Source of the DNA: Ranitomeya imitator
Taxonomy: Eukaryota
Reading direction: 5' to 3'
DNA: 64,000 nt
Assembly (NCBI RefSeq): GCF_032444005.1
Contig: NC_091291.1
Coordinates: 131,316,001-131,380,000 of the forward strand
Shown here: in pieces, positions 17,401 through 53,916 of the stretch
How positions within the stretch are numbered: position 1 is the first letter of the stretch
Layout of the letters: each line of letters opens with the position of its first letter
Made by a program: the position numbers and the translations under genes
Notes under the pieces: generated by a model
The model's database searches: none
What the model was told of the DNA's origin: nothing
The model's input: the letters and a program-made list of their open reading frames with translations, nothing else

Positions 17401-19201
17401 TCTTTATTTTATAAAGCTATGAATAACATTGTGAATTCCTGAGATTCCTATAATATTGAGCTTTTCATAAAAATATTCAGGCCGCAGATGTCCTCAAAAC
17501 AAAGTACAAGCCAACCGCAGATGCCCCCGATGCAGTGCACCAGCCATGAGCACATCTTACAAAAGTGTATCAGTCACAGTTTCCCCTAAGATGTCGCATT
17601 CGATAGGGGCTGCACAGCGACTTTGACCGTAAAATAATACAACATTGGTCGACAACTTACAGCTAAAGATAGTGAATCAGGTCGTGTTGAAATCCAGTAG
17701 ATTTGGATTTTTGTTGGCCGACGTCAAGGTTGAGTCAGCTTGGGTTTTGTAACTTGACCATGTTCTCCATCGTTAGATGCAACTTAGGAGATCAAAGTTA
17801 CTATCTTAATGATGGAATGTCAACGTCAAAGGACAATTACATATCATAATCTGGGGTGGATGCAAAACCCCTGTGCAGGGGCAACATGTTGGCCCATTGC
17901 TTTCCAAATACTCTCATTTGATGAGCATGAAATGCTAGTGTTGCACCCCCAAAAACTGTGAGCAATAGATGGAAATCATTACCATAATTCCGAATGTGCA
18001 ATATAGTAGACATTGAGTTTAATTTTTCTTCTCTGGTAAAAATGGGCCCCCTTACAAGCAAGGACCATATGTGATTGCTCAGGTTGCAATTAGTTTATGT
18101 CCTCTCCAGAACTTAAAGGAACCGAGTGGGATTGTGTACCCTTTAGAGCCTTAGGTCCCTACTATATGGCCAAACATCACAATATTGACGCTGACACTAT
18201 AATGCGTATAGGGGCCTCCACCTTCACCAATATGATGGTTTCTGGAGTTATCCTGATTGATTCTTTTCTTCCACAGTGCTCTCATTGAAGAAAACCTGAA
18301 GAGTGTAAACAATTTGGATGATGAATTTGTGGGTCAGCTGGTTCCTTTGGCCAAGCAAATCCATGAACAACTGATGAAAGACTCTCAAACCCTGAGAGAA
18401 CAGGTTAGACAAGAGATGGAGAAGTTGGCGGTCAAGTTGTCTCCATATACGGATGAGGTGCAAAAACAGGTGAACAGGAATGCAGAGGAGCTCCAGGTCA
18501 AATTGGCTCCACATGCCAAGGCGTTTCAAGCCCAATTAGATGAAAGCACCCAGGTTCTCAGTGAGCAGCTGAAATCTATATGGAAGAACCTAGAGATGAC
18601 CATCAAAGACAATGCTGACCATTGGCAGGCGTCAGTGGTCCCATACTCCCAGGAACTGAAAAGTGTAATAGATGGCAACATGGAGCAGCTGGAGAAACAG
18701 CTCAAACTCATCAACAATCACATAAAAAGTAATATTGATGAGCAAATGGAAGAGTTGTATAAAAGCCTCATACCCTACGCAGAAGACGTGAAGGATGAGC
18801 TTCACAAACAGATCGAGAACATAGACTTTCAGATGAAGAAAAATGCTGAGCAGATGGAGAGCAAAGTCTTGGACTTTACTGGGAAACTACGAGACCAACT
18901 TTACCCCTATGCCAATGAGCTAAGAACCAAGTTAAATAGTAATACATCAAATGCCAAACAGACGATGGAGACATATCTCACGCAGATGAACCAGCAGATG
19001 GACCACAAGATTGGAGAGTTTAGGGAGACGATAACGCCCTTTGCAGATGCCCTCAACAAGGCTCTAATAAAGAGAGTGAAAGACATGAAGAAGAAACTTG
19101 GAGAATACACAGTGAGCATGCAGGATCAGATGGAGTACTTGGAGAAAGACGTTCGAGACAAGATCCGAGACTTCATCACCCAAGGGGATCCAGAAAACTA
19201 A
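14422..19201 (+). CDS. apoa4: Apolipoprotein A-IV-like, copy 2; join(14422..14467,16501..16618,18277..19201), 362 aa
   Basis: MLAKVSVLVLAMSITG | YQAKVPSDQISEFFWNYLSRLAGGTTEKVQQSDFSKQL | last exon colinear without gaps with copy 1 (DFQMKKN, QLYPYANELRTKL, DMKKKLGEYTVS). Canonical splice sites in phases 1 and 2. AATAAA at 19325. Confidence 0.92.
14760..16140 (+). mobile_element. Degraded L2/CR1-clade LINE 3' fragment in apoa4 copy 2 intron 2
   Basis: Translation LIHSRLDYCNALLMGLP…LHWLTICCRVQYKL is typical of the C-terminal RT region of L2 elements. Frameshifted and interrupted. Confidence 0.7.
15195..15790. repeat. ~119-bp tandem repeat (about 5 copies) inside the L2 fragment
   Basis: CATCTCATCCTGATCTATGTCTACCACCATTCCCATGCCCTCCACAGTGCCCTTCCCTAAATTTCC… recurs every 119 bp. 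Confidence 0.85.
17033..17305. mobile_element. PIF/Harbinger-like MITE, left end eroded
   Basis: Inverted arms GGTTCATATAGCATTTTTTCCTAC / GTAGGAAAAAATGCTATGTGAACCCAGCC with internal symmetry. Confidence 0.55.
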
Positions 19202-19494: not shown

Positions 19495-20975
19495 AGTGAA
19501 ACCCATAGGGGAAGCTCTTCCTGTAGATGAAACTATAAGAAGGCTCCTCCTGCAGATAGGGATTGAGTGGGAAGCTTCTCCTGCAGATAGGACCATAGGG
19601 GAAGGCTTCTCATGCGGACAGGGCCATAGGCGAGGCTCCTCCTGTAGATAGGGCCAAGAGGACGCTCCTTCTGCAGATAGGGCCATAGGAGGTTTCTCCG
19701 TCAGATAGGACCATAGAGGGAGATTCCTACTGCTGATAGGGCCATAGGGAGAGGCTACTTCTGCAGATATATCCATAGGGAGAGCCTCTTCCTGCAGAAA
19801 GTGTCACGGGGAGAAGCTCTTCTTGCAGATAGGGCCATGGGGAGAGGTTCCTCCTGCAGTTAGGGCCATAGGAGGATCCTCCTGTAGATATGGCCAAGAG
19901 GAGGTTCCTCCTGCAGATAGAGTTATAAGGTGAGCTTAGTCCTGCAGATAGGGCCATAGGTTGAGACTCTTCCTGCAGACAAGGCCTTAGAGTAAGACTT
20001 CTCCAACAGATAGGGTTATAGGGAGAGGCTCCTTCTATAGATAGGGACATAGAGGGAGGCTCCTCTTGTAGATAGGGCCATAGAGGGAAGCTAGTTTTGT
20101 AGATAGGGCCATAAGGGGAAGCTCCATCTGCAGATAGGGCCATAGAAAAAGGTTTATCCTGTAGATAAGGCCATAGGGGAAGCGGTTCCTACAGATAGGG
20201 CCATAGGGGAGGCTCCACCTGCAGATAGGACCATACAGTGACTCTCCTCCTGCAGATAGGGCCATATTGAGAGGTTCCCCTGCAGAAAGAGCCATATGGA
20301 GAGGCTCTTTCTGCAGATGGGGCCATAGGGAGAGGCACTTTCTGCAGATGGGGCCATAGGGAGAGGCTCTTTCTGCAGAAAGTATCATGAGGAGAAGATG
20401 CTCTTGCATATAGGGCCATGGGGAGATGCGCATCCTGCATATAAGGCCATAGGGGAGGCTCCTCCTGCAAATAGAGTCATAGTGGGAGGGGAGGCTCCTC
20501 CTGCAGATAAGGCCATAGAGGGAGGCTCCTCCTGTAGGCATAGAGACAGGCTCTTCTTCCAGATAGGGCCGTAGGGGAGGCTCATCCTTTAGATAGTGCC
20601 AGAGGGAGAAGCTCATTCTGAGAAAGTGGCAATAGAAGCAGGCTCCTCTTGCATATAGGGCCATAAAGGGAGGCTCCTACTGCAGATAGGGCCATAGAGG
20701 TAAGCTCCTCCTATAGACAAGACCTTAGAGGTAAGCTCCTCCTATAGATAGGACCTTAGAGGTAGGTTCCTCCTGTAGAAAGGGCCATATAGGGAGTCTC
20801 CTCCTGCAGACAGGACCATAGGGGAGACTCCTCCTGTAGGTAGCGCCAGAGGGAGAGGCTCCTGCTCCTCCTATAGATAGCGCCAGAGGGAGAGGCTTGT
20901 CCTGCAGATAGGATCATAGAGTGAGGTGCTTCCTGCAGACAGGGCAATAGGAGGAGGCTTCTCCTGCAGACAGGT
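19495..20975. repeat. Degenerate ~31-33-bp minisatellite downstream of apoa4 copy 2
   Basis: Unit approximately CTCCTCCTGCAGATAGGGCCATAGGGGAGG, with many PstI-like CTGCAG cores. Confidence 0.9.
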
Positions 20976-23215: not shown

Positions 23216-24827
23216 CAGGTCCTTCTCAAAAAATTAGCATATAGTGTTAAATTTCATTATTTACCATAATGTAATGATTACAATTAAACTTTCATATATT
23301 ATAGATTCATTATCCAGCAACTGAAATTTGTCAGGTCTTTTATTGTTTTAATACTGATGATTTTGGCATACAACTCCTGATAACCCAAAAAACCTGTCTC
23401 AATAAATTAGCATATTTCACCCATCCAATCAAATAAAAGTGTTTTTTAATAACAAACAAAAAAACCATCAAATAATAATGTTCAGTTATGCACTCAATAC
23501 TTGGTCGGGAATCCTTTGGCAGAAATGACTGCTTCAATGCGGCGTGGCATGGAGGCAATCAGCCTGTGACACTGCTGAGATGTTATGGAGGCCCAGGATG
23601 CTTCAATAGCGGCCTTAAGCTCATCCAGAGTGTTGGGTCTTGCGTCTCTCAACTTTCTCTTCACAATATCCCACAGATTCTCTATGGGGTTCAGGTCAGG
23701 AGAGTTGGCAGGCCAATTGAGCACAGCAATACCATGGTCAGTAAACCATTTACCAGTGGTTTTGGCACTGTGAGCAGGTGCCAGGTCGTGCTGAAAAATG
23801 AAATCTTCATCTCCATAAAGCATTTCAGCCGATGGAAGCATGAAGTGCTCCAAAATCTCCTGATAGCTAGCTGCATTGACCCTGCCCTTGATGAAACACA
23901 GTGGACCAACACCAGCAGCTGACATGGCGCCCCACACCATCACTGACTGTGGGTACTTGACACTGGACTTCAGGCATTTTGGCATTTCCTTCTCCCCAGT
24001 CTTCCTCCAGACTCTGGCACCTTGATTTCCGAATGACATGCAAAATTTGCTTTCATCAGAAAAAAGTACTTGGGACCACTTAGCAACAGTCCAGTGCTGC
24101 TTCTCTGTAGCCCAGGTCAGGCGCCTCTGCCGCTGTTTATGGTTCAAAAGTGGCTTTACCTGGGGAATGCGGCACCTGTAGCCCATTTCCTGCACACGCC
24201 TGTGCACGGTGGCTCTGGATGTTTCCACACCAGACTCAGTCCACTGCTTCCTCAGGTTCCCCAAGGTCTGGAATCGGTCCTTCTCCACAATCTTCCTCAG
24301 GGTCCGGTCTCCTCTTCTCGTTGTACAGCGTTTTCTGCCACATTGTTTCCTTCCAACAGACTTACCATTGAGGTGCCTTGATACAGCACTCTGGGAACAG
24401 CCTATTTGTTGAGAAATTTCTTTCTGGGTCTTACCCTCTTGCTTGAGGGTGTCAATGATGGCCTTCTTGACATCTGTCAGGTCGCTAGTCTTACCCATGA
24501 TGGGGGTTTTGAGTAATGAACCAGGCAGGGAGTTTATAAAAGCCTCAGGTATCTTTTGCATGTGTTTAGAGTTAATTAGTTGATTCAGAAGATTAGGGTA
24601 ATAGGTCGTTTAGAGAACCTTTTCTTGATATGCTAATTTATTGAGACAGGTTTTTTGGGTTATCAGGAGTTGTATGCCAAAATCATCAGTATTAAAACAA
24701 TAAAAGACCTGACAAATTTCAGTTGGTGGATAATGAATCTATAATATATGAAAGTTTAATTGTAATCATTACATTATGGTAAATAATTAAATTTAACACT
24801 ATATGCTAATTTTTTGAGAAGGACCTG
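23216..24827 (-). mobile_element. Tc1-family IR/DR transposon, full length (1612 bp)
   Basis: TA target duplication. 200-bp TIRs (23216-23415, 24628-24827) with 2 mismatches by hand comparison, and inner/outer direct repeats (TCTCAA[A/T]AAATTAGCATAT). Confidence 0.96.
23494..24498 (-). CDS. Tc1 DD34E transposase, intact, 334 aa
   Basis: MGKTSDLTDVKKAIIDTL… with a paired-like HTH. Catalytic motifs FSDESKF, FQHDLAPAH and NPIENLW with 34 residues between the second D and E. Ends in KGFPTKY*. Confidence 0.95.
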   Translation of the reverse strand: MGKTSDLTDVKKAIIDTLKQEGKTQKEISQQIGCSQSAVSRHLNGKSVGRKQCGRKRCTTRRGDRTLRKIVEKDRFQTLGNLRKQWTESGVETSRATVHRRVQEMGYRCRIPQVKPLLNHKQRQRRLTWATEKQHWTVAKWSQVLFSDESKFCMSFGNQGARVWRKTGEKEMPKCLKSSVKYPQSVMVWGAMSAAGVGPLCFIKGRVNAASYQEILEHFMLPSAEMLYGDEDFIFQHDLAPAHSAKTTGKWFTDHGIAVLNWPANSPDLNPIENLWDIVKRKLRDARPNTLDELKAAIEASWASITSQQCHRLIASMPRRIEAVISAKGFPTKY

Positions 24828-32070: not shown

Positions 32071-32221
32071 ACCCTTATTCTAGGGATTAAGCAAATTTTT
32101 CACAAAAAAAACCATTTATCTGATGCAAAAATGCGTGTTTCATGATACTGGGTATCAAGTGATTGTAATAAAATGTTATGGAATAATGGAGAAAATTTCA
32201 CTCCACAGGGTATAAAAGAAA

Positions 32222-35200
32222 ATGTTGGCTAAAGTGGTAACGTTCACTCTTATAAGCATCATCACAGGTCAGTCCTTGTTGATTCTTTTAAATCACTTCT
32301 CATTCTGGGCTTAGGAGTCCTGTGGGCGGTCCCAAAAAATGATTGACAGTTATATATGTATACACAGTCTGTAATGCCATTCCCCGGCTTTTCTTTTCTT
32401 TTTTAGTTAACTATCACAGAAATTCCCTCTAATACTGTCTTTAGTTCTTTTTTTAGCTTATCTTTTCCTGTTAAATCTCTTCTTAAAGGGAATCTGTCAC
32501 TAGGATCAACCCGCCTAAGCCGCTTATATTGGCATGCAGGTAACTGAAAGTCGAATAAAATGATACCTTGATATCTGCGATCCGATGTTTTATTACAGAG
32601 AAATCCATGTGTTTCTTAATATGCAAATGAGTTAAGATCTATGGGTTGGGACATAGATCTCATGGAGAAATCTGCCTCTAGAGCGGATCTTAAATAAAAG
32701 GGGGCGTTACCAGACATATAGATCATGGGAGCAGACGGAGAGTCATTAAATGTCTCACATTGGTAACGACTCCTTTAATTTACAATGCATTCTAGAAGCA
32801 GTTTCTCGGGAAGATCTATGCCCGGCCCATAGATCTTAACATCTCATTTACATATTAAGAAAAACATGGATTTCTCTTGAATAAGACATCGGATCGCATA
32901 CATCAAGGTATCATTTTATTCAGCTTCCTGGGACCTACATGCCCATATAGATGGCTTAGGAAGGTTGATCCTCCCAACACATTCCCTTTAATGAGTAACT
33001 AAATCTTTTAAAGGTTTAAGTTACCCTTTAAAAGTTACTTGTGTTATTTTTATCTACATTATTGGGAAGGTAAAAGGGGCAATTTCTCGACGACTTTTAC
33101 CATCCTGTTCCCTCATGAGCTTTCACGTCAGACCCCGCTGATCTCATGGTTGAACATAAATCTTGCCAATTCAATATAAAAATAACGATTGTCATTCTTC
33201 GCTCAGGTTCTCTCGTCGATGACAACACGAAACTACTGGATGATGCCCTCTTGTCTTACCTCAGCCTCCTGAGCGGCAGCACCAAGGACAGCAGCTCCTC
33301 ACAAGTGTCCCTCTCTGACTTCAGCAGCCTCTTGGAGTATGTGAGATGAAAGTAACAGCAGCTAAATGTTTACAAGTAGAAGGAAACTCTTGATACAATG
33401 TATACAATCATTATATGGAAGCATACTCCAATTATTTGTTAAAACTTTTTCTATTCTTTATAGTTTATCTGTGTGTTGCATTTGGGCTCCGAATTCATCA
33501 TTGCTGTTTCTCCACTTCTCTGGAGTAATTTGCTGCCTTTTGTCATGATCCAGGTCGGGGGTTTGCTTCTTGCTTTTCCTTCCTCGGTCTGGTTATGGTG
33601 GGGTTAACTTTTTCTGCCTCTCTTTGGTTCGTGGGTGGCTATTTAGTGCTGCCACTCGTGGTAGCATTTGTCAGTGATAGTTCCAGTCCCTGGCTTGAGC
33701 AACTGATCCTTATACCCTAGTGATCCTTCTGCCTTTGACCACCTGTATTTGTGCCTGACCTGTTCCCTATCTCTGACTTAGAGTGTGTTTGGTGGTTCCC
33801 TACAGTGTATGACTCGGCTTGAATTCTGAACCCCGCCTCCTGCTTTCCGTCTGTTACTACGTTTCCCGTTCTGGCTTTGACTCTTTGGCTCATACCCTGA
33901 CTACATCTTCTGTCTCATGTTTTGGATCCCATGCTCCCGCCTGGTTCCGATTTCTGTCTTGTCTCTGACCACGTGCATTGCTGTGACCTCCGGTACTTAT
34001 CTTCCTGTTTTTTGCTGACCGGACTGTCTAACTTCTCTGCCACCTCCTTGTGGCGCTCCGCACTTTGCACTGTGGTGCTACACGGTGAGTGCTACCGGTT
34101 TCCCCTTACCTGCGCCCCCTGGTGGAGGTTGCGTGCAACTGCCTTGCAGGTGCATTACATTATCACTGACAAATGCTACTAGAAATGGCACCAATAAATA
34201 GCCACCCAGGAACCAAAAAGAGGCAGGAAAACTTAACCCCACCATAACCAGGCCAGGGAAAGAAAAGCAAGAAGCAAACCCGGACCTGGATCATGACACC
34301 TTTTAGTAGCTTAAGGCTTTCACACTAGCGTCGAATTCGGCCCGTCGCATTGCGTCGGGCCGAGATTCCGATGCTAGCGTTTGATGCGCCGCACAACGGG
34401 TGCAGCGGATACATTTCTCTGGCGCATCCGCTGCCCCATTGTGAGGTGCGGGGAGGTGGGGGCGGAGTTCCGGCCGCGCATGCGCGGTCGGAAAAAGCGG
34501 TCCGTCGGCAGCAAAAAACGTTACGTTTAACGGTTTTTGCTCTCGGCGGTCCGCCACAACACGGCGCAACCGTCGCACGATGGTTGCGACGTGTGTCAAT
34601 ACGTCGCAATGCGTCGGTAATGTTACTCTATGGGGCAAAAACGCATCCTGCAAACAACTTTGCAAGATGCGTTTTTTCCCCTAAACGACGCATTGCGACG
34701 TATTCAAAACAACGCCAGTGTGAAAGTAGCCTTAGTATTTGCTCCTTATTCTCTATACATTTTGTGTCAATTTCTAAGTTGTCTTTCTTTTTTGAGTCTT
34801 TCATTTTTTATATTTTTTCTCAACAACATCGCTTATCAGATTTTTTAGACAGATTCATGAAATGTTGTATTTTTTTGTGGTACATTTGACTCCAGTCCCT
34901 GACTGGAGTAAGGTTTCTGGAGGTTTTCAATTTGCGAATTGTCACGCTGCAGCTATGCACGTAACTGCAACTTCCACCAGATGGCAACAGAGTGGAAGGA
35001 AAGTAACAAGTCTGCAAGGGCAGACCTGCAGTGCTTCAGCGAAGCTACCACTAGGTGGCAGCAGAATAGTTAAACAAGCCGAGTCAAAACCTAGACTGTC
35101 ACACAGTACAAAGGAAAAAAAAACAGTAACAGAGTCAGAGGAGAGCCAGAGGGTCAAACACCAGACAAGAAGCAGAAGTATCAGGAACCTGAGGCAAAGT

Positions 35201-36517
35201 CAAATCAGAGTCAAAGCCAAGTCAAACACAGAAATCAAAGAGCAATCAGGAAACACAAAGACAAGATTGGCATGGAAGGAGAGATAGACATGGGCAAGGT
35301 CAAAAGGTACAGCACATCGGTCTGATCCGAGCGCTAATGCACAGGGACTGGCCAAGGGTGACATCATTACAGCTGCATGTATTTCTATCAAAGTGTCCCA
35401 GTGGGGTAGGGAGAGCCGCTGCCAGTCCGTGTATTAGTCATCTGATCTCGGACTGAGGTGCGCGGACGTCTGAATGAGCCGCACGAGTGTCGTCCAAACT
35501 TGTCGATATCGGTGAGTTCGGCCAACATTAGTCCTTGGTGTATGGGCGTATTTAGAGACTTTTTTGCCTATCATAGGAAACAGAATTCTTGCACTTTTCC
35601 AAGTAAATCATTTTCTTGCTTCCAATTTCAGCAGCACTCTAACATTGGGTGAAGAAGAGAAAAGCGTCTACGCACAACTACTGAACAAGGTCTCGTTTTT
35701 TGCCAAAACAGTCTATGAACAGGCGACAAAAGACTCGGAAAAACTCCAGTTGGAGTTGGAACAGCTGAAGATCAAACTCATCCCTTATTCCAAAGAGGTG
35801 ACAAAGCTGCTAAGTAAGACCACAGAAGAGCTGGAGATTACGCTCAATCCCTACGCTGATGAACTTCAGACGCAAGTCGAAAAAATTACTTTGGAATTTA
35901 TCAAAAAGTTAAAAAGTTTCAGTCTAGACTTGAAGTTGCCGTTGGTCTTGTACTTCCAAACACTGGACGTTAGAATGGCGGAGTGCCTTAATGCGCTGAG
36001 GAGCGCGGTCGCAACATGCACTGAAAAAGTCAAAGAGACGATCGATCTGCAAGTTGCGGCTTTGTATCAAAGTCTTTCTCCTTTTGCGGAAGAAATGCAA
36101 GACGCTTTGAGGAAACAACTGGGGAACTTGAACTTTTCGATGAAAAAAAGCGTCATCTTGATTGGGAGCAAGATCTTGGAGAACACGTCAATGCTGGAGA
36201 AGGAAATGAGTCTTTGTATCAGTCAGATAAAGGAGAAGAAGGGCTCTCTCTACCGGAATGTCCGATACACAGTAACATCCTGCCTGGTCGATTTGAGCCA
36301 AAAGATTAAAATGTTTAATTCGGTGATGACCCCCTTTGGAGAAACTCTCACCAAGTCAGTCGTATTCCGCATTGAGAACATACAAAACTTGCTTCAGGGA
36401 TCTGCAGCTGTGAATCTGCAAAACAAGAAAGATATTCTAGAAAAGAGCATTTTCGACACGATCAGCAACTTTATTAACAATAGCACCTTGCTGACCAACG
36501 CAAGCGTCACTGAGTGA
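32222..36517 (+). CDS. Divergent apolipoprotein A-IV-like, copy 3; join(32222..32267,33207..33336,35632..36517), 353 aa
   Basis: Signal peptide MLAKVVTFTLISIITG (compare copy 2). Same intron phases 1 and 2. The last exon aligns with copy 1 (KDSEKL, LIPY, LNPYADEL, SPFAEEMQ, FSMKKS, MTPF). No stops or frameshifts. Confidence 0.85.
32487..32987. mobile_element. T2/Kolobok-type MITE (501 bp) in apoa4 copy 3 intron 2
   Basis: TTAA TSD on both sides; termini AGGGAATCTGTC…ATTCCCT; long internal inverted symmetry. Confidence 0.85.
33541..34298. mobile_element. TGT…ACA element with ~140-bp TIRs and 5-bp TSD, related to the solo-LTR-like family
   Basis: TGTCATGATCCAGGTC… / …GACCTGGATCATGACA. TSD CCTTT at 33536-33540 and 34299-34303. 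The left end is homologous to the 26960 element. Confidence 0.8.
34315..34731. mobile_element. PIF/Harbinger MITE
   Basis: TIR GGCT(AC)TTTCACACT…AGTGTGAAAGTAGCC, with TAA/TTA flanks and a CpG-rich palindromic interior. Confidence 0.8.
34940..35300 (-). mobile_element. Truncated solo-LTR-like copy (same family as 26960-27519)
   Basis: Begins TGTCACGCTG. GCTACCACTAGGTGGCAGCAGAATAGT…AAGCCGAGTC is the reverse complement of the 27360-27420 segment. Confidence 0.65.
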
Positions 36518-37802
36518 CAGCATAAACCTGCTCATCTGATCCCTACACTTAAAGGGGTTGGTCACTTTATTGTCCCATATGAGCTAGAAACAGCAAAGTA
36601 ACTAACGTACCAATATACTGTGATCAGATGTATACTGATACTGCCGCCCTATGTTTTCTCCGTTCTGCGCCAACACACTCCAGCCCCAACATGGCATCTG
36701 ATGAAGGTGTGTGTGACCAGACCAGCCATGTTGAAGTTGGGCGATGCGCTCCAGATGGAGAAAAGTCAACCCATGGTCGTCAGCATACAAGTGAACACAT
36801 CAATGCAAATCTTCCCATAACATTTTATTGTTAGAGAGGACCTGTCCTTAGGTCAAAAGTGCCCAATTTTGGCCGTATTCTATTCCTGCTGTTCCCCAAA
36901 TTTTCTGTTAATCCGCCTTATGGTTCCTGAGATATGGGCCTTTTTATACAGTGCAATTCTGGTCTTTACTAATGGGGGCGTGTCTCACAGGCTAATTATG
37001 CAGAGACGCCTAAAGACACGCCCCGGAGGATCCCATGAGCCACACCCCTGCGGTAATTTATTTTAACTAAAAAGGTCTATATTTCTGGAACCGAATGGTG
37101 AATTAAAAAAAAATTGAATACAGCAGGAATAAACAGGTCCTCTATATATGCTGTCTCTAACATACATGTAAGAATGAAGAAGTGACCTCCCCCTTTACTA
37201 CAGGGGCTTCACATAGGTGCAGGGCTGGTGGGACATGTGTCCATGGGTGGCAGAGGGTGCCAAGAAGCCACTCAGCCTTGGCCAGCTTATTTAGATACAG
37301 AACTACTGCTCTAACATTACTATATATTATTTTAAGTCATTTTATGGTTTTGCTAAATTACACTGTTGTATTCTCTCTGATACAGTATATAAAATGTAAC
37401 GTGCTGCCGCCTTTCATTAGCAATCTTCAGTACGGAGCCTGTGAAGTGGCTGGTTATTAATATATGCAGCTCAGGCCACAGCAATGAGACTTAGTATTAG
37501 TGGGAAATTTAAATAGTCTTCTATCATTACCTTTTCTCCTCTACTTTATATAATCATTTTCCATTTAATAAAACTTAAATAAAGCTTTCCTCAAATTAAT
37601 ATGCATTCATTTTTTTTTGTATTTTTTCCATATTTGGAGGCATAGCTATCGGGGTGCTGAAGATTTTGGTGATGTCTGCGGCCACTGAATGATTACAGTG
37701 CTCACTTTACATAATGCCAGAATCACTGAAATAGCACCAGCAGGGGAGGGGTGCATGTGATTTTATTTTACATCATCTCAAATATCATATCACATATCAG
37801 AG

Positions 37803-39258
37803 ATCATATCCAGCCTATATTACTGGGAGAGACACAGATATCACATCCAGCCTATATTACTGGGAGAGACACACAGATCTCACATCCAGCCTATATTACT
37901 GGGAGAGACACAGATCTCACATCCAGCCTATATTACTGGGAGAGACACACAGACCTCACATCCAGCCTATATTACTGGGAGAGACACACAGATCTCACAT
38001 CCAGCCTATATTACTGGAGAGACACACAGAGCTCACATCCAGCCTATATTACTGGGAGAGACACACAGACCTCACATCCAGCCTATATTACTGGGAGAGA
38101 CACACAGATCTCACATCCAGGCTATATTACTGGGAGAGAGACAGAGCACACGTCCAGCCTATATTACTGGGAGAGACACACAGAGCTCACATCCAGCCTA
38201 TATTACTGGGAGACACACAGATCTCACATCCAGCCTATATTAGAGACACACAGAGCTCACATCCAGCCTATATTACTGGGAGAGACACACAGAGCTCACA
38301 TCCAGCCTATATTACTGGGAGAGACACACAGAGCTCACATCCAGCCTATATTACTGGGAGAGACAGACGTCACATCCAGCCTATATTACTGGGAGAGACA
38401 CACAGACCTCACATCCAGCCTATATTACTGGGAGATACACACAGAGCTCACATCCAGCCTATATTACTGGGAGATACACACAGAGCTCACATCCAGCCTA
38501 TATTACTGGGAGAGACACACAGATCTCACATCCAACCTATATTACTGGGAGAGACACACAGCTCACATCCAGCCTATATTACTGGGAGAGACACACAGAG
38601 CTCACATCCAGCCTATATTACTGGGAGAGACACACAGACCACACATCCAGCCTATATTACTGGGAGATACACACAGAGCTCACATCCAGCCTATATTACT
38701 GGGAGATACACACAGAGCTCACATCCAGCCTATATTACTGGGAGAGACACACAGACCTCACATCCAGCCTATATTACTGTGAGAGACACACAGAGCTCAC
38801 ATCCAGCCTATATTACTGGGAGAGACACACAGACCTCACATCCAGCCTATATTACTGGGAGAGACACACAGACCTCACATCCAACCTATATTACTGGGAG
38901 AGACACACAGAACTCACATCCAGCCTATATTACTGGGAGAGACACACAGACCTCACATCCAGCCTATATTACTGGGAGAGACACACAGAGCTCACATCCA
39001 GCCTATATTACTGGGAGAGACACACAGAGCTCACATCCAGCCTATATTACTGGGAGAGACACACAGACCTCACATCCAGCCTATATTACTGGGAGAGACA
39101 CACAGACCTCACATCCAACCTATATTACTGGGAGAGACACACAGAGCTCACATCCAGCCTATATTACTGGGAGAGAGACACAGACCTCACATCCAGCCTA
39201 TATTACTGGGAGAGACACACAGAGCTCACAACCAGCCTATATTACTGGGAGAGACACT
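37803..39258. repeat. 39-bp minisatellite (~1.45 kb)
   Basis: Unit CACATCCAGCCTATATTACTGGGAGAGACACACAGA[G/C]CT. Confidence 0.96.
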
Positions 39259-40446: not shown

Positions 40447-40937
40447 TTTTCCTTCTGGAAATCAGTGGCGTATGAATGGGTGGTCTTCTCACATATATTT
40501 GTGACAAGATCACTTTAACTGGATTTCCCCTTTGTACTAATCAGCTTGCTCTCAGTGCACATCACCAATACACAATGCAAGATGCAGCCGGCTGTGACGC
40601 AATGAAGATGAACTTTAATCAGGATCATCCAGTTCTGTATAGTTGGAGGTATATCGCTGCCCGTTGGACTTTGACGTTGACAGAATTTTGTAGACAGAAT
40701 GAAAACAACAGATAATGATCATCTAGCGGAGATAAAACTCAGGAGCTGTCAACTTCGCCCTAGTTTTCAATGTTTGTACACAAAAATGGTGACAAGTGCG
40801 ATGCCTCATCCCCAACAAGGGGCCAGACATGGCTTAAGAGTAGATCCCCGGTTAGGCGATTGGGTGACTGACAAAAGTAACCCTGAGGTCTGACTGTGCA
40901 CTGACAACCGTAACATTCCTCATTGACAATATCGAAG

Positions 40938-43900
40938 AGCTGTCCGAACCCTCACCCAATGCTGTCCGAACCCTCACACAGAGCTGTCCGAACCCTCACC
41001 CAATGCTGTCCGAACCCTCACCCAGAGCTGTCCGAACCCTCACTCAGAGCTGTCCGAACCCTCACCCAATGCTGTCCGAACCCTCACTCAGAGCTGTCCG
41101 AACCCTCACCCAATGCTGTCCGAACCTTCACTCAGAGCTGTCCGAACCCTCACCCAGAGCTGTCCGAACCCTCACCCAATGCTGTCCGAACCCTCACCCA
41201 GAGCTGTCCGAACCCTCACTCAGAGCTGTCCGAACCCTCACCCAATGCTGTCCGAACCCTCACTCAGAGCTGTCCGAACCCTCACCCAATGCTGTCCGAA
41301 CCTTCACTCAGAGCTGTCCGAACCCTCACCCAGAGCTGTCCGAACCCTCACTCAGAGCTGTCCGAACCCTCACCCAATGCTGTCCGAACCCTCACTCAGA
41401 GTTGTCCGAACCCTCACTCAGAGCTGTCCGAACCCTCACCCAGAGCTGTCCGAACCCTCACTCAGAGCTGTCCGAACCCTCACTCAGAGCTGTCAGAACC
41501 CTCACCCAGTGCTGTCCGAACCCTCACTCAGAGCTGTCAGAACCCTCACTCAGAGCTGTCCGAACCCTCACTCAGAGCTGTCCGAACCCTCACCCAATGC
41601 TGTCCGAACCCTCACTCAGAGCTGTCCGAACCCTCACCCAGAGCTGTCCGAACCCTCACTCAGAGCTGTCCGAACCCTCACCCAATGCTGTCCGAACCCT
41701 CACTCAGAGCTGTCCGAACCCTCACTCAGAGCTGTCCGAACCCTCACCCAGAGCTGTCCGAACCCTCACTCAGAGCTGTCCGAACCCTCACCCAATGCTG
41801 TCCGAACCTTCACTCAGAGCTGTCCGAACCCTCACCCAGAGCTGTCCGAACCCTCACTCAGAGCTGTCCGAACCCTCACCCAATGCTGTCCGAACCCTCA
41901 CTCAGAGTTGTCCGAACCCTCACTCAGAGCTGTCCGAACTCTCACCCAGAGCTGTCCGAACCCTCACTCAGAGCTGTCCGAACCCTCACTCAGAGCTGTC
42001 AGAACCCTCACCCAGTGCTGTCCGAACCCTCACTCAGAGCTGTCAGAACCCTCACTCAGAGCTGTCCGAACCCTCACTCAGAGCTGTCCGAACCCTCACC
42101 CAATGCTGTCCGAACCCTCACTCAGAGCTGTCCGAACCCTCACCCAGAGCTGTCCGAACCCTCACTCAGAGCTGTCCGAACCCTCACCCAATGCTGTCCG
42201 AACCCTCACTCAGAGCTGTCCGAACCCTCACTCAGAGCTGTCCGAACCCTCACCCAGAGCTGTCCGAACCCTCACTCAGAGCTGTCCGAACCCTCACTCA
42301 GAGCTGTCAGAACCCTCACCCAGTGCTGTCCGAACCCTCACTCAGAGCTGTCAGAACCCTCACCCAGAGCTGTCCGAACCCTCACTCAGTGCTGTCCGAA
42401 CCCTCACTCAGAGCTGTCCGAACCCTCACTCAGAGCTGTCAGAACCCTCACCCAGAGCTGTCCGAACCCTCACCCAGAGCTGTCCGAACCCTCGTCCAGT
42501 GCTGTCCGAACCCTCACTCAGTGCTGTCCGAACCCTCACTCAGAGCTGTCCGAACCCTCACTCAGAGCTGTCAGAACCCTCACCCAGAGGTGTCCGAACC
42601 CTCACCCAGAGCTGTCCGAACCCTCGCCCAGTGCTGTCCAGACCCTCGCCCAGTGCTGTCTGAACCCTCGCCCAGTGCTGTTCAAACCCTCACCCAGTGC
42701 TGTCCGAACCCTCACCCAGAGCTGTCCGAACCCTCGTCCAGTGCTGTCCGAACCCTCACTCAGTGCTGTCCGAACCCTCACTCAGAGCTGTCCGGACCCT
42801 CACCCAGAGCTGTCCGAAGCCTCACCCAGTGCTGTCCGAACCCTCGTCCAGTGCTGTCCGAACCTTCGCACAGTGCTTTCCGAACCCTCACCCAGAGCTG
42901 TCCGAAACCTCACCCAGAGCTGTCCGAACCCTCACCCAGAGCTGTCCGAACCCTCGTCCAGTGCTGTCTGAACCCTTGTAGTGCTTTCCGAACCCTCACC
43001 CAGAGCTGTCTGAACCCTCATCCAGTGCTGTCTAAACCTTCGCACAGTGCTTTCCGAACCCTCGTCCAGTGCTGTCTGAACCCTCCTCCAGTGCTTTCCG
43101 AACTCTCACCCAGAGCTGTCTGAACCCTCATCCAGTGCTCTCCGAACCCTCGCCCAGTGCTGTCCGGACCCTCACCCAGAGCTGTCCAAACCCTCGTCCA
43201 GTGCTTTCTAAACTCTCACCAAGAGCTGTCCGAACCCTCACCCAGTGCTGTCCGGACCCTCACCCAGAGCTGTCCAAACCCTCGTCCAGTGCTTTCCAAA
43301 CTCTCACCAAGAGCTGTCCGAACCCTCGCCCAGTGCTGTCCGGACCCTCACCCAGAGCTGTCCAAACCCTCGTCCAGTGCTTTCCAAACTCTCACCAAGA
43401 GCTGCCCGAACCCTGGCCCAGTGCTGTCTGAACCCTGGCCCAGTGCTGTCCGAACCTCACCCAGAGCTGTCCGAACCCTGGCCCAGTGCTGTCTGAACCC
43501 TGGCCCAGTGCTGTCCGAATCTCACCCAGAGCTGTCCGAACCCTGGCCCAGTGCTGTCTGAACCCTGGAACAGTGCTGTTCGAACCCTCACCCAGTGGTG
43601 CCCGAACCCTCGTCCAGTGCTGTCTGAACCTTTGCACAGTGCTTTCCGAACTCTCACCCAGAGCTGTCCGAACCCTCGCCCAGTGCCGCACGAACCCTCA
43701 CCCAGTGCTGTCTGGACCCTTGCCTAGTGCTGTTCGGACCCTCGCCCAGTGCTGTCTGAACCCTTGCAAAGTGCTTTCTGAACCTCACCCAGAGCTGTCC
43801 AAAGCCTCGCCCAGTGCTGTCCGAACCCTCACCCAGTACTGTCCGAAACCTCACCCGGTGCTGTCCGAACCCTCGCCTAGTGCTGTCCGGACCCTCGCCT

Positions 43901-44636
43901 CGCCCAGTGCTGCTCGAACCCTCACCCAGTGCTGTCCGGACCATCGCCCAGTGCTGTCCGAACCCTCACCCAGAGCTGTCCGAACCCTCACCAAGAGCTG
44001 TCTGAACCCTTGCACAGTGCTTTCTGAACTCTCACCCAGAGCTGTCCGAACCATCGCCCAGTGCTGTCCAAACCCTCACCCAGAGCTGTCCGAACCCTCA
44101 CCCAGTGCTGTCCGATCCCTCGCCTAGTGCTGTCCGGACCCTCGCCCAGTGCTGTCCAGACCCTCGCCCAGTTCTGTCCGGACCCTCGCCCAGTGCTGTC
44201 TGAACCCTCGCCCAGTGCTGTTCAAACCCTCACCCAGTGCTTTCCGAACCCTCACCCAAAGCTGTCCGAACCCTCACCAAGAGCTGTCTGAACCCTCACC
44301 CAGTGCTTTCCGGACCCTCACCCAAAGCTGTCCGAACCCTCACCAAGAGCTGTCTGAACCCTCACCCAGAGCTGTCCGAACCCTTGCTCAGTGCTGTCCG
44401 GACTCTCGCCCAGTGCTTTCCGAACCCTCGCCCAGTGCTGTCCGAACCCTCACCCAGTGCTTTCCAAACCCTCGCCCAGTGCTTTCCGAACCCTCGCCCA
44501 GTGCTGTCCGAACCCTCGCCCAGTGCCACACGAACCCTCACCCAGTGCTGTCTGGACCCTCGCCCAGTGCTGTCCGAACCCTCGCCCAGTGATGTCCGAA
44601 CCCTCGCCCAGAGCTGTGCGAATCCTCGCCCAGTGA
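40938..44636. repeat. 22-bp minisatellite (~3.7 kb)
   Basis: Unit GCTGTCCGAACCCTCAC[T/C]CA[GA/AT/GT]. Homogeneous in the 5' part and progressively degenerate in the 3' part. Confidence 0.97.
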
Positions 44637-47295: not shown

Positions 47296-50200
47296 CCCAT
47301 CTGGCGGGCATGGGATACTGACCTGGCCACTACAATTCCACGGGTCCCATCTGACAGGCATGGGTTACTGACCTGGCCACTACAATTCCATGGCACCCAT
47401 CTGACAGGCATGGGATACTGACCTGGCCACTACAATTCCACGGCTCCCATCTGACAGGTATGGGATACTGACCTGGCCACTACAATTCCATGGCACCCAT
47501 CTGACAGGCATGGGATACTGACCTGGCCACTACAATTCCATGGCTCCCATCTGGCGGGCATGGGATACTGACCTGGCCACTGCAATTCCATGGCTCCCAT
47601 CTGGCGGGCATGGGATACTGACCTGGCCACTACAATTCCACGGCTCCCATCTGACAGGTATGGGTTACTGACCTGGCCACTGCAATTCCATGGCTCCCAT
47701 CTGACAGGTATGGGTTACTGACCTGGCCACTGCAATTCCATGGCTCCCATCTGACAGGTATGGGTTACTGACCTGGCCACTACAATTCCATGGCTCCCAT
47801 CTGGCGGGCATGGGTTACTGACCTGGCCACTACAATTCCACGGCTCCCATCTGACAGGTATGGGTTACTGACCTGGCCACTACAATTCCATGGCACCCAT
47901 CTGACAGGCATGGGATACTGACCTGGCCACTACAATTCCACGGCTCCCATCTGACAGGTATGGGTTACTGACCTGGCCACTACAATTCCATGGCACCCAT
48001 CTGACAGGTATGGGTTACTGACCTGGCCACTACAATTCCATGGCACCCATCTGACAGGCATGGGATACTGACCTGGCCACTACAATTCCACGGCTCCCAT
48101 CTGACAGGTATGGGTTACTGACCTGGCCACTACAATTCCACGGGTCCCATCTGACAGGCATGGGTTACTGACCTGGCCACTACAATTCCATGGCACCCAT
48201 CTGACAGGCATGGGATACTGACCTGGCCACTACAATTCCACGGCTCCCATCTGACAGGTATGGGATACTGACCTGGCCACTACAATTCCATGGCACCCAT
48301 CTGACAGGCATGGGATACTGACCTGGCCACTACAATTCCATGGCTCCCATCTGGCGGGCATGGGATACTGACCTGGCCACTGCAATTCCATGGCTCCCAT
48401 CTGGCGGGCATGGGATACTGACCTGGCCACTACAATTCCACGGCTCCCATCTGACAGGTATGGGTTACTGACCTGGCCACTGCAATTCCATGGCTCCCAT
48501 CTGACAGGTATGGGTTACTGACCTGGCCACTGCAATTCCATGGCTCCCATCTGACAGGTATGGGTTACTGACCTGGCCACTACAATTCCATGGCTCCCAT
48601 CTGGCGGGCATGGGTTACTGACCTGGCCACTACAATTCCACGGCTCCCATCTGACAGGTATGGGTTACTGACCTGGCCACTACAATTCCATGGCACCCAT
48701 CTGACAGGCATGGGATACTGACCTGGCCACTACAATTCCACGGCTCCCATCTGACAGGTATGGGTTACTGACCTGGCCACTACAATTCCATGGCACCCAT
48801 CTGACAGGTATGGGTTACTGACCTGGCCACTACAATTCCATGGCACCCATCTGACAGGCATGGGATACTGACCTGGCCACTACAATTCCACGGCTCCCAT
48901 CTGACAGGTATGGGTTACTGACCTGGCCACTAGAATTCCATGGCACCCATCTGACAGGCATGGGATACTGACCTGGCCACTACAATTCCATGGCTCCCAT
49001 CTGGCGGGCATGGGATACTGACCTGGCCACTGCAATTCCATGGCTCCCATCTGGCGGGCATGGGATACTGACCTGGCCACTACAATTCCACGGCTCCCAT
49101 CTGACAGGTATGGGTTACTGACCTGGCCACTGCAATTCCATGGCTCCCATCTGACAGGTATGGGTTACTGACCTGGCCACTGCAATTCCATGGCTCCCAT
49201 CTGACAGGTATGGGTTACTGACCTGGCCACTACAATTCCATGGCTCCCATCTGGCGGGCATGGGTTACTGACCTGGCCACTGCAATTCCACGGCTCCCAT
49301 CTGGCGGGCATGGGATACTGACCTGGCCACTACAATTCCATGGCTCCCATCTGACAGGTATGGGTTACTGACCTGGCCACTGCAATTCCATGGCTCCCAT
49401 CTGGCGGGCATGGGATACTGACCTGGCAACTGCAATTCCATGGCTCCCATCTGGCGGGCATGGGATACTGACCTGGCCACTGCAATTCCATGGCTCCCAT
49501 CTGGCGGGCATGGGATACTGACCTGGCCACTACAATTCCATGGCACCCATCTGGCGGGCATCGGATACTGACCTGGCCACTGCAATTCCATGGCTCCCAT
49601 CTGGCAGGTATGGGATACTGACCTGGCCACTACAATTCCATGGCTCCCATCTGGCGGGCATGGGATACTGACCTGGCCACTACAACTCCATGGCTCCCAT
49701 CTGGCGGGCATGGGATACTGACCTGGCCACTACAATTCCATGGCTCCCATCTGACAGGTATGGGATACTGACCTGGCCACAGCAATTCCATGGCTCCCAT
49801 CTGGCGGGCATCGGATACTGACCTGGCCACTGCAATTCCATGGCTCCCACCTGGCAGGTATGGGATACTGACCTGGCCACTACAATTCCATGGCTCCCAT
49901 CTGGCGGGCATGGGATACTGACCTGGCCACTACAACTCCATGGCTCCCATCTGGCAGGTATGGGATACTGACCTGGCCACAGCAATTCCATGGCTCCCAT
50001 CTGGCGGGCATGGGATACTGACCTGGCCACAGCAATTCCATGGCTCCCATCTGGCGGGCATGGGATACTGACCTGGCCACTGCAATTCCAAGGCACCCAT
50101 CCGGTGGGCATGGGATACTGACCTGGCCACTACAATTCCATGGCTTCCATCTGGCAGGCATGGGATACTGACCTGGCCACTACAATTCCATGGCTTCCAT

Positions 50201-51126
50201 CTGGCAGGCATGGGATACTGACCTGGCCACTACAATTCCATGGCACCCATCTGGTGGGCATGGGATACTGACCTGGCCACTACAATTCCATGGCACCCAT
50301 CTGGCGGGCATAGGATACTGACCTGGCCACTACAATTCCATGACTCCCATTTGGCGGGTATGGGATACTGACCTGGCCACTACAATTCCATGGCTCCCAT
50401 CTGGCGGGCATGGGATACTGACCTGACCACTACAATTCCATGGCTCCCATCTGGCGGGCATGGGATACTGACCTGGCCACTACAATTCCATGGCTCCCAT
50501 CTGGCGGGCATGGGATACTGACCTGACGACTACAATTCCATGGCTCCCATCTGGCGGGCATGGGATACTGACCTGGCCACTACAATTCCATGGCTCCCAT
50601 CTGGCGGGCATGGGATACTGACCTGGCCACTACAATTCCATGGCTCCCATCTGGCGGGCATGGGATACTGACCTGGCCTCTACAATTCCACGGCTCCCAT
50701 CTGGAGGGCATGGGATACTGACCTGGCCACTACAATTCCATGGCTCCCATCTGGCGGGCATGGGATGCTGACCTGGCCACTACAATTCCATGGCTCCCAT
50801 CTGGAGGGCATGGGATACTGACCTGGCCACTACAATTCCATGGCTCCCATCTGGCGGGCATGGGATACTGACCTGGCCTCTACAATTCCACGGCTCCCAT
50901 CTGGAGGGCATGGGATACTGACCTGGCCACTACAATTCCATGGCTCCCATCTGGCGGGCATGGGATACTGACCTGGCCACTACAATTCCATGGCTCCCAT
51001 CTGGCGGGCATGGGATACTGACCTGGCCACTACAATTCCATGGCTCCCATCTGGCGGGCATGGGATACTGACCTGGCCACTACAATTCCATGACTCCCAT
51101 CTGGCGGGTATGGGATACTGACCTGG
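47296..51126. repeat. 50-bp minisatellite (~76 copies, 3.8 kb) just upstream of apoa5 exon 2
   Basis: Unit CTGACCTGGCCACTACAATTCCATGGCTCCCATCTGGCGGGCATGGGATA. The register is kept without visible indels. Confidence 0.97.
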
Positions 51127-51351
51127 ACATTGCAAATCTGTGGCTCCAAAGCGTTGGCCATGGATTACTAACCTAGCTGCATGACTAGGATCCAGCAAAT
51201 GTATTCCCCCTCATTGCTTCCATATTCATGAACATTATACCAAGATATATTTATTTCCTGTATGAACATTATACTAACACTATTCTATCTTTATACAAGG
51301 TTTCTACATTTTGCATTCTTGGAAATTGAGATTTAAGTCGGTGGCTCGCAA

Positions 51352-53916
51352 ATGGCACGTGGGAAGGTTTTTTACCTGTTGCTGATTTTGGGTATAGCTG
51401 GTAAGTTATCATTACAGTGCGTTATCTTCAAAAATCAAAATCGACAGCCAATTTTATGAATGTACAGAGTGCAGCCTTTCCTAAACTAACAAAAAAAAAT
51501 AGATCTCACAAGACAAACTCAACACTTATTGTAAATGAAAGGGAGAGTTACCAGTGTGAGACATGTAATGACTGACAGTCGTCTCTCCTGATCTATAACC
51601 ATATACTGTATTTAATTTATATTTCATGAAAATAAGCAACTATGTAATAACTATGTAATACAACTTCTTTAGAGAAATCCGCTTCTTTCTCCTCCTGGAC
51701 TGATCTTTCACTCTCAATCAATGGGTAAAATGTGTATTCGGTGGACAGGTCTCCCATTACTGAGGTAGGAGATGACAGTTGGTGCTCACAAGAATCTATG
51801 CAGAGGGGAGGAGATAGAGACAGACACAGACATTCAGCTGCAGTTCTCCATAGAACTCTATGAGCACCAACTGTCATCTATCTTAGTAATAGGAAAGTCT
51901 GTAATCAATGAAGATGCATTTTACTCGTGGAACCGAGAACTTTGAGAATGAAAGATCCATCCAGGAGGAGAAAGAAGAGAGTTTCTTCGACAACTTATAT
52001 TATAAAGTTTCTTATTTTTAAATTTACTATTGATTTTTGAAAAATAAATGTTTATATTCCACTTTTTAACAAAACTTTTTCCTTGTCAGGTTGCCAGGCT
52101 GATTATACTAGAAATGGCTTCTGGGATTATTTCAGCCAGGTGGCTAATGCGAAAAATGAATGGCACCTTCATAAAACTCCGGTGACCGAAGTCAGGTAGG
52201 TTTATCTGAAACTAAAACATATGATCTGCATAGCTACATGGCAATAAATAATATAACACCTTTTTATCTCAGATGGCAAACTTTAATTAAGGACAAGGAT
52301 AACGAGTGCAGGTCAAATTACTGGGAGAAAAACAAATGTATTTCCTCCCGGGAGCTGCCGGCTTTCAGTCATGGAGGCGTGCACAGAGTGGCTGCAGTAA
52401 CCGCTCACTTTCCTGTGAGTGGCAGCTGTTATTACGCCCTGGTAATATGATTGACAGCCTGCTGTGTAGGACATCTGGGCAGAGCAAGCTGTCAATCAAA
52501 GTGCCGTGGTGTGCTTACAGTCGCCGCTCACTGGATAGTAAGTGGAGATGCTTTGTGCATTCCGCCATGACTGAAAGCCGGCAGCTCCTTTGAAGAAATA
52601 AGTTAATTTTCTCTTGGTTCCCGCACTTTCAGAAAGGTGGCCGGCCAGCATTGTAACGTGACTTATCTGCAGATTACATAGTGTTTACAAAGGTGACAGG
52701 TTCCCGTTATGCTATACTTTCCAACCCATGCAGAACGATTCTGGAAAATGGAGAGTTCATGACTCTTGGAAGAGCTGCCAAGAGTCTCCAGGGTGCCGAC
52801 GAAACCTCCCAAACACCTCACAAAACACATTGCTCCCCAAAAATTTCCTTGCATGACGCGGGAATACTCCGCCATCAGACGTTGCCATTGAACACCATGG
52901 CTATGTGCCAAAACTTGGGCCGCCACATGGATCATCTCCCGGACTAGTGGCCAATATGGCTAGAGCTGTTTGCAATCATGTACTTTACTGCAATGGAAAC
53001 ATGAAATTAATACGAGTCTTTTACTTTATTCCTGTCTAGCGGCTTGAGAAACAGTTTTCAAAATGGCGTCAACTACGTGGGCAATATCTTTAGTCCATGG
53101 AAGAGCGGGCTCCAGAAGCACTTGTATGAAGACTCAGAGGGACTACACAAACTTATCCGTAGGGAACTGCAGGAGATCCAACGGAAGATTTACCCTTACA
53201 TTGATGAAGCGCACCAGAAGATAAGCAAAAATCTCGAACAGGTCCAGAACCGTCTGCTGCCTTACACCGATGAGCTGAAGCACCATTTGGAGTGGGGCGC
53301 AAAGGAGATGGTCGCACAGTTCAGCTTGAGCAAGGATCACATGAGTAATAACGTCCCGCACAAGCTGGCAGAGAACATCCAAGACCAAATCATTCTGCAA
53401 ACAGAGAAGGTAAGAGCAGTTCTAATTCCATTGGGCGAAAGACTCCTGGCAGAGATCCACCATGCAGTTGAAGAACTCCATGAGACCCTTTCTCCTCAAT
53501 CTTTGACCTCCCAGGAAAAGCTAACGGCTCAGGTACAAGAATTATCTCGTAAATTGACTCAGAACGCAAATAATTTGCACGAGAAAATCCATAAAAACCT
53601 GGATGCACTGAAAGAACAGTTGGTGACGTATCCTCGAAATTTGAGAGAGAGGTTTCCTGAAGGTCAACCCAACGTACCGGTGGCTCCTTATGTTGAAGAG
53701 ATGGCGGCTCAGGTGCACAGAGAAGTCGAGGAGTTTCAGAGGAATACCCTGATGCAGATTGAACACTTTACCCATACTATTAAAATGGAAATGGAGGAGA
53801 CGAAGTCCAAAATGTCTCCGGCTACGTCAGACTTACACGACACGGTGACTTCGATAGAGGAAATACAGGAGAAACTGGAGTCTTTGTGGACGGATATATC
53901 ACTGAACTTAAAATGA
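51352..53916 (+). CDS. apoa5: Apolipoprotein A-V; join(51352..51400,52090..52195,53040..53916), 343 aa
   Basis: MARGKVFYLLLILGIAG | CQADYTRNGFWDYFSQ (human RKGFWDYFSQ) | VQELSRKLT, IHKNLDALKEQL, LESLWTDI match APOA5. It lies immediately upstream of ZPR1. Branch point TACTAAC at 51272 precedes the exon 2 acceptor. Confidence 0.94.
52320..52590. mobile_element. Palindromic MITE in apoa5 intron 3
   Basis: Arms GAGCTGCCGGCTTTCAGTCATGG / CCATGACTGAAAGCCGGCAGCTC. Confidence 0.6.

Follow-up and report, generated by a model that had tools for sequence, protein, structure and literature searches.

Exchangeable apolipoproteins open a helix bundle onto lipid, and their Pro-punctuated repeats and lack of internal disulfides are thought to aid flexibility. 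Why, then, should a frog gene of the apoA-IV type carry four Cys? The question is raised by a 64,000-nucleotide stretch of the Ranitomeya imitator genome (NCBI RefSeq assembly GCF_032444005.1, contig NC_091291.1, positions 131,316,001 to 131,380,000 of the forward strand; hereafter, the window), in which three apoA-IV-like genes are found on the same strand. An earlier note on this DNA had reported four Cys in the last exon of the third gene (i.e. copy 3) and none in the last exons of copy 1, a canonical apoA-IV-like gene with nine Pro in its last-exon open reading frame (ORF; 10364–11209, + strand), and copy 2 (18257–19201, + strand), a count that was borne out when these two ORFs were used as comparators. 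Copy 3 is shown here to be a divergent apoA-IV paralogue that arose by tandem duplication within the frog APOA4-APOA5 cluster and that has been retained in Hyloidea, Myobatrachidae and Ranoidea (i.e. in neobatrachians) as a functional gene under moderate purifying selection.

Structure and phylogeny of the copy 3 gene

Exact splice assembly indicated that positions 35632–36517 (+ strand) are the complete last exon (i.e. exon 3) of copy 3, running from an AG acceptor to the stop codon. A protein search recovered a 353-amino-acid product (P0001; NCBI name 'apolipoprotein A-IV-like [Ranitomeya imitator]') that is 100% identical to copy 3, and a tblastn of P0001 against the window resolved three coding exons on the + strand with GT/AG borders. 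Exon 1 (32222–32267, GT donor at 32268) contains the ATG and encodes the greater part of a hydrophobic N-terminus of signal type (MLAKVV...ITG), exon 2 (33207–33336) encodes an N-terminal region with a clade-specific STKDSS motif and exon 3 encodes the 11/22-mer amphipathic repeats and the four Cys. The same three-exon layout was present in Rhinoderma darwinii (L005) and Dendropsophus ebraccatus (L006). Ahead of the copy 3 ATG (32196–32221), an acceptor-like CACAG is found at a distance of 13 nt and a TATAAA at one of merely 11 nt. The start codon may accordingly be in a second exon, with a putative non-coding 5' exon further upstream; APOA1 and APOE have a non-coding first exon.

Close orthologues were obtained from Dendrobates, Ranitomeya variabilis, Phyllobates, Anomaloglossus, Bufo, Leptodactylus, Hyla, Dendropsophus, Rhinoderma, Eleutherodactylus and Engystomops. 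An exhaustive search with a HMMER profile extended the set to Pseudophryne (Myobatrachidae), Rana and a ranoid-like transcript (P0015), whilst Lithobates, Mantella and Pyxicephalus came from a word-index search with the Rana protein and Aquarana from a cluster look-up. Beyond this clade, the next HMMER matches were amniote canonical apoA-IV sequences with E-values of 4e-22 and weaker. A word-index search with copy 1 for canonical frog apoA-IV returned two distant matches only. A salamander sequence (P0019), considered as an older member of the clade, reads as canonical apoA-IV and was rejected.

In a maximum-likelihood tree, 17 sequences formed one clade (support 100/99) that was sister to copies 1 and 2 of the window (99/95). 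The branching order within the clade was Ranoidea, then Pseudophryne, then Hyloidea and matches frog systematics. Copy 3 did not group with the canonical apoA-IV of its own species and is not the canonical apoA-IV orthologue. Measured from the duplication node, Ranitomeya copy 3 has accumulated ~1.08 changes per site as compared to 0.31 for copy 1, a roughly threefold higher rate of evolution since the duplication.

Membership of the wider family was supported by several observations. All four apolipoprotein-type last exons in the window matched PF01442, with scores of 205 bits for copy 1 and 173 bits for copy 2; the copy 3 exon scored 77 bits (E 2e-21), below the 90-bit gathering cut-off, and PF01442 is recorded for full-length P0001 and all of the orthologues. 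A profile of the copy 3 clade matched human apoA-IV chains (E 4e-72 and 3e-57) and also apoA-I and apoE chains. Copy 3 has the gene structure of the family (i.e. two short exons, the first encoding the signal, ahead of a large terminal one) and its position in the APOA1/C3/A4/A5 cluster, where it is flanked by the two other apoA-IV-like genes on one side and by a fourth member of the family (53044–53916) on the other. Copy 3 belongs to the apoA1/A4/E family, within which it is a novel variant.

Selection and expression

Pairwise Nei-Gojobori estimates were made for four coding sequences (Ranitomeya copy 3, Rhinoderma, Dendropsophus and transcripts). The ratio of non-synonymous to synonymous substitution rates (dN/dS) ranged from 0.21 to 0.39 over the six pairs (dS 0.43–1.13), values well removed from the figure of about 1 that is expected of a decaying copy; the ratio for copy 1 versus copy 2 was 0.13. 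The three-exon frame was intact in about twenty species across the neobatrachian radiation. Expression was apparent for an orthologue from another hyloid rather than for R. imitator itself: P0005 and a near-identical variant (P0068) had uninterrupted coding sequences of 1.08–1.09 kb on contigs of 1.5–2.3 kb from seven SRA runs and, because the gene has introns, these contigs represent spliced mRNA.

Placement of the four Cys

The earlier note, working from a hand alignment to copy 1, had placed each Cys on the residue directly after a lost junction Pro. MAFFT alignments and a profile (HMM) alignment to human apoA-IV upheld this for three of the four residues. Cys2 (C188; TGC, 36017–36019, + strand) follows the lost Pro of copy 1 LIPI, which corresponds to LTPY in human apoA-IV, Cys3 (C254; TGT, 36215–36217, + strand) that of LYPY in copies 1 and 2, and Cys4 (C276; TGC, 36281–36283, + strand) that of LEPY in copy 1. 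The codons ahead of Cys2, Cys3 and Cys4 are ACA, CTT and TCC, as had been claimed. Cys1 (C177; TGC, 35984–35986, + strand) did not fit the pattern, and the proposed conversion of LTPY to MAEC was wrong. Orthologues free of a deletion found in copy 3 (i.e. those of Rhinoderma and Eleutherodactylus and P0005, which derives from transcripts) need no gaps here in an alignment with copy 1 and fix LVLY as the true counterpart of the copy 1 LTPY junction (L165-Y166, 35948–35953, + strand), with the Pro gone and the Tyr (35951–35953) retained. Cys1 instead aligns with the Asn of IDDN, which is located mid-way through a 22-mer and 11 residues downstream of the LVLY junction; the site is Asn in copies 1 and 2, ranoids and human, and the Cys codon is two base changes from AAY.

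The deletion removes 11 residues, is specific to dendrobatoids (Ranitomeya, Dendrobates, Phyllobates and Anomaloglossus) and is located at 35932/35933 in a stretch of species-variable length that was modelled as a loop. Spacings of 44 and 22 residues between the Cys had been proposed; the figure of 44 was a misreading caused by this dendrobatoid-only deletion and the true spacings are 11, 66 and 22. As these are all multiples of 11, the four Cys occupy the same phase of the 11-mer repeat.

Chance placement of the Cys had been judged unlikely. A uniform null agreed, with P ~9e-5 for at least three of four Cys occurring one residue after a junction Pro, but a null that allows for Tyr codons was far weaker. 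Of the 21 copy 1 codons from which a single base change yields Cys, seven encode junction Tyr, and a null restricted to codons one step from Cys gave P = 0.09 for copy 1 and P = 0.008 for copy 2. The probability of all four Cys occurring in one 11-mer phase was ~0.03. Because junction Tyr account for a third of the one-step-to-Cys codons in canonical apoA-IV, the position of the Cys is weak evidence; the real evidence for their significance is conservation and not position.

Conservation of the Cys and order of changes

All four Cys were present in 17 of 18 hyloid sequences, the exception being Rhinoderma, which has Cys, Tyr, Tyr and Cys at the four sites with TAT codons at both Tyr. Codons alternated between TGT and TGC from species to species whilst the residue stayed Cys, and the hyloid Cys were near-invariant across at least 12 species while overall identity between orthologues fell to 56–62%. 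The corresponding residues at the sites of Cys1 to Cys4 are Asn, Ile, Tyr and Tyr in copy 1, Asn, Tyr, Phe (Leu in one) and Cys in ranoids, and Thr, Ser, Tyr and Phe in Pseudophryne. Cys4 is thus present in all ranoid orthologues, and Cys2 and Cys3 were always both present or both absent. Most ranoids have one further Cys beside Cys4, at position 226 or 134. About 14 of the 17 sequences at species level have an even number of Cys in the mature protein. Mantella aurantiaca (P0055) lacks the usual ranoid Cys 226 and has Cys 134, so that its count stays even. Anomaloglossus baeobatrachus (P0003) has a fifth Cys, produced by a Tyr-to-Cys change at the retained LNPY junction.

Rhinoderma was the first hyloid branch with weak support (79/90), and its Tyr residues at the sites of Cys2 and Cys3 may be either the ancestral state or a double reversal. 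Junction Pro was lost at four of eight junctions across the whole clade, including LVLY, which never gained a Cys; it is retained at four of eight junctions in hyloids and at about one in ranoids. As the Pro is already absent in Pseudophryne, in ranoids and at the Cys-free LVLY, Pro loss was the earlier and the more general change. The Cys were gained afterwards and step by step, with Cys4 common to ranoids and Cys1 acquired on the hyloid stem. The idea that selection swapped Pro hinges for Cys staples as one event is not supported by this order, i.e. clade-wide Pro loss preceding the Cys. None of the outcomes that the earlier note had named as refuting its proposal (Cys not conserved in orthologues, dN/dS of about 1 or no expression) was encountered, the transcripts being those of an orthologue, and three of the four Cys do align with junction positions.

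Two orthologues were unusual in other respects. In Engystomops pustulosus, P0012 (307 aa) differs from P0011 in having Ser at the Cys1 site and in being without 58 residues spanning Cys3 and Cys4; these missing residues fall within a single exon elsewhere, and P0012 may be a duplicate in decay or an allele, or the difference may stem from assembly or annotation. The Ranitomeya variabilis protein (P0066) differs from P0001 at ~5% of residues, a high value for congeners.

Predicted fold and Cys geometry

The amphipathic repeats are kept in copy 3 (hydrophobic moments of 0.25–0.43) with a reduced Pro punctuation. The four Cys are oriented 13–69 degrees from the local hydrophobic moment and are therefore on the apolar face, which they share with the Tyr and Phe that remain at junctions. 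An AlphaFold2 (AF2) model of the deletion-free P0005, made with 34 sequences, had a predicted local distance difference test score (pLDDT) of 66.9 overall and of 77–92 over most of residues 110–320, with helices at 66–162, 172–218, 223–268 and 274–361. Residues 111–327 of this model superposed on a designed single-chain four-helix bundle (4uos; Z 16.7, rmsd 2.7 Å) and residues 161–328 on human apoA-IV (3S84; Z 10.7), which was also the top Foldseek match. In model and alignment, the stretch of species-variable length carrying the dendrobatoid deletion corresponds to the loop that joins the first two helices of the bundle. Its position is the middle of the long dimer-spanning helix of canonical apoA-IV, and a variable loop at this point therefore points to a closed monomer. 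We infer that copy 3 carries a secretory-type signal, as judged by eye from the N-terminus, and folds as a closed monomeric four-helix bundle. The protein was taken as probably secreted from its hydrophobic N-terminus and from C-terminal N-x-S/T sequons (NNS/NST, 36476–36487, + strand), putative glycosylation sites that most orthologues of the clade have retained and that have no counterpart in copies 1 and 2.

Axial heights of the Cys were estimated crudely from the helix limits of the model alone. Cys1 (19.5 Å, helix 2), Cys4 (16.5 Å, helix 4) and Cys3 (10.5 Å, helix 3) form one layer, each on a separate helix, towards the loop end of the predicted bundle, and Cys2 (36 Å, helix 2) is three turns above Cys1. 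One intramolecular bond among Cys1, Cys3 and Cys4 is compatible with this crude geometry.

Interpretation of the conserved Cys

The Cys are most likely to form one or more disulfide pairs in the oxidising secretory pathway, because they are predicted to face the core, are near-invariant at 56–62% overall identity and mostly occur in even numbers. Our preferred reading, to which we assign a probability of roughly 0.5, is that these disulfides lock the bundle and yield a stiffer, mainly soluble derivative of apoA-IV. Early in the lineage, half of the Pro punctuating the 22-mers were lost, and a stretch of variable length, predicted as a loop, arose in the middle of the long helix. Cys were then gained stepwise on aromatic or polar positions in the same 11-mer phase, and the four have scarcely varied in hyloids since. 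On the preferred reading, at least one pair would become a disulfide in the oxidising secretory pathway, tying the bundle helices and limiting the opening that exchangeable apolipoproteins need for lipid binding. Loss of Pro hinges combined with the helix tie would produce the more rigid protein. Support by analogy comes from work attributed to Narayanaswami et al. 1996, in which an engineered disulfide locking the apolipophorin III bundle is said to block lipoprotein binding, and from Deng et al. 2015, who reportedly found human apoA-IV to be more stable and more prone to oligomerise once Pro was changed to Ala.

Several points weigh against a disulfide lock. The first AF2 model (P0001, 19 sequences) was poor, with a pLDDT of 59.9. 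The crude geometry excludes two intramolecular bonds in a closed bundle, Cys2 has no partner at its own level and the helices bearing Cys1 and Cys4 would be diagonal in an up-down bundle. Pairing by co-occurrence (i.e. Cys1 with Cys4 and Cys2 with Cys3) puts Cys2 and Cys3 ~25 Å apart axially. Cys counts are odd in Anomaloglossus and Dendropsophus, and buried free Cys do occur in apolipoprotein bundles, e.g. Cys112 of apoE.

The best-surviving alternative, a real possibility at somewhat under one chance in four, is that the Cys are free thiols, either tolerated as small apolar substitutes for Tyr and Phe or lining a pocket that would bind a metal or an electrophile or serve in redox sensing. 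The abundance of junction Tyr among the one-step-to-Cys codons means that the positions need no special selection, and the change at LNPY in Anomaloglossus is a fresh example of such a Tyr-to-Cys step. The gene has stayed intact in Rhinoderma without Cys2 and Cys3 and in Pseudophryne without any of the four, and the layer formed by Cys1, Cys3 and Cys4 on three helices would suit a cluster of thiols. Points against free thiols are the near-invariance in at least 12 hyloid species at low overall identity, the two base changes that Cys1 required from Asn and Cys counts that are mostly even; unpaired Cys are, moreover, uncommon in proteins of the secretory pathway.

Almost level with free thiols, and only slightly behind, is the proposal that the Cys form intermolecular disulfides only, giving a covalent homodimer or oligomer or a link to another protein in the manner of apoA-II, apoE3 or apoA-I Milano. 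To our knowledge, all natural Cys of exchangeable apolipoproteins act through intermolecular bonds, and canonical apoA-IV itself dimerises (3S84). The lack of a same-level partner for Cys2 in the monomer model would be explained, as Cys2 is near the middle of the bundle and a two-fold antiparallel contact would bring it near its own copy. The additional ranoid Cys at 226 or 134 is level with Cys4 but ~30–36 Å away from it in the monomer, which also fits an antiparallel dimer better. Three features are in conflict with this proposal: the variable loop replacing the middle of the long helix favours a closed monomer over a swapped dimer, the four Cys point towards the apolar core and not the surface, and three of them occur in one layer of the same chain.

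A more speculative variant, to which we give a low probability, combines the three-thiol core layer with Cys2 in a redox-gated lock, whereby reduction would enable binding of lipid or ligand, or in a thiol pocket for a metal or an electrophile. We know of no exchangeable apolipoprotein with either a redox-gated lock or a thiol-lined pocket. The suggestion that copy 3 carries a specific lipophilic ligand is pure conjecture.

Use of the Cys as S-acylation sites that anchor the protein to membrane or lipid, another option raised in the earlier note, would agree with their occurrence on the lipid-facing side of the helices but is very unlikely for a secreted protein, since the cleavable-looking signal and conserved N-x-S/T sequons imply a luminal location and the enzymes of S-acylation act cytosolically. 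Least probable of all is a decaying duplicate whose Cys are chance, functionless Tyr-to-Cys changes: the sub-threshold PF01442 score (77 bits, against 205 and 173 for copies 1 and 2) and the long branches in the tree are outweighed by the intact frame in about 20 species, the spliced orthologue transcripts and the maintenance of Cys through synonymous codon changes, and a pseudogene was rejected on the dN/dS values and the clade tree.

Comparison with known apolipoproteins

Canonical apoA-IV, as represented by human APOA4 (3S84) and by copies 1 and 2, shares with copy 3 the gene cluster, three coding exons, 11/22-mer repeats and full-length homology, at 38% and 32% identity of copy 3 to copies 1 and 2, respectively. 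Copy 3 differs in the loss of half of the junction Pro, in having four conserved Cys as opposed to none, in its extra sequons and in a 4-residue deletion. The canonical protein also has a continuous long reciprocating helix where models predict a variable loop for copy 3. Human apoA-IV Pro-to-Ala mutants resemble copy 3 in the removal of conserved junction Pro from an apoA-IV scaffold, but are laboratory constructs without Cys, whereas the Pro loss of copy 3 is natural and old and was followed by gain of Cys.

Cys within the amphipathic helices of a secreted apolipoprotein are also found in apoA-II, apoE3/E2 and the apoA-I variants Milano (R173C) and Paris (R151C). These proteins have one or two Cys and form intermolecular disulfide dimers; copy 3, unlike them, has four Cys, on the apolar face and in one 11-mer phase. 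The closest model for a locked copy 3 is provided by apolipophorin III and the N-terminal domain of apoE with engineered disulfides, in which the bond reportedly keeps the bundle from opening and from binding lipid until it is reduced. Those locks are artificial and biochemically verified, whereas the bond in copy 3 is a prediction.

The copy 3 gene is already present in NCBI automatic annotation, as 'apolipoprotein A-IV-like' or 'uncharacterized protein'. A literature search found no paper on this gene or on a Cys-bearing frog apoA-IV. The paralogues were not separated in a poison-frog study in which 'apoa4' was up in the liver of wild frogs and apoA-IV was among the abundant plasma proteins (bioRxiv 10.1101/591115). 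Frog transcriptome or plasma work that names 'apoa4' must separate copy 3 from canonical apoA-IV. The clade constitutes a natural experiment over tens of millions of years: under purifying selection throughout, it first lost Pro hinges and then acquired Cys on the apolar side of the helices. Should the Cys indeed lock the bundle, copy 3 would be an example of the conversion of a lipid carrier into a rigid soluble protein and would offer structural biology a stable apoA-IV-like scaffold.

Genomic context

Four apolipoprotein-type last exons were present in the ORF list for the window, all on the + strand: those of copies 1 and 2, the ORF at 35564–36517 for copy 3 and the fourth family member (53044–53916), which matched PF01442 with 125 bits and has 23% identity to copy 1. 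Position alone suggests that the fourth exon is APOA5. An ORF fragment ~4 kb downstream of it (57592–57830, + strand) presumably resembles the start of the ZPR1 zinc finger; a Pfam search gave no match for this fragment. The arrangement suggests that the window comes from the APOA4/APOA5/ZPR1 cluster, with the gene order APOA4 (three copies), APOA5 and ZPR1, as in amniotes.

Between copies 2 and 3, an intact 355-aa ORF of a Tc1/mariner-type transposase (23494–24561, − strand) was identified by Pfam matches to DDE_3 (E 9e-19) and HTH_Tnp_Tc3_2 (E 8e-15). Long minisatellite arrays of up to 168 copies occupy much of the space between the apolipoprotein genes and are the source of the long repetitive ORFs in the list. 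These arrays are located at 3902–8371, 19541–20974, 37798–39257, 40936–44633, 47296–51147, 56676–57345 and 57939–59266, with periods of 32, 31, 39, 22, 50, 21 and 24 bp, respectively.

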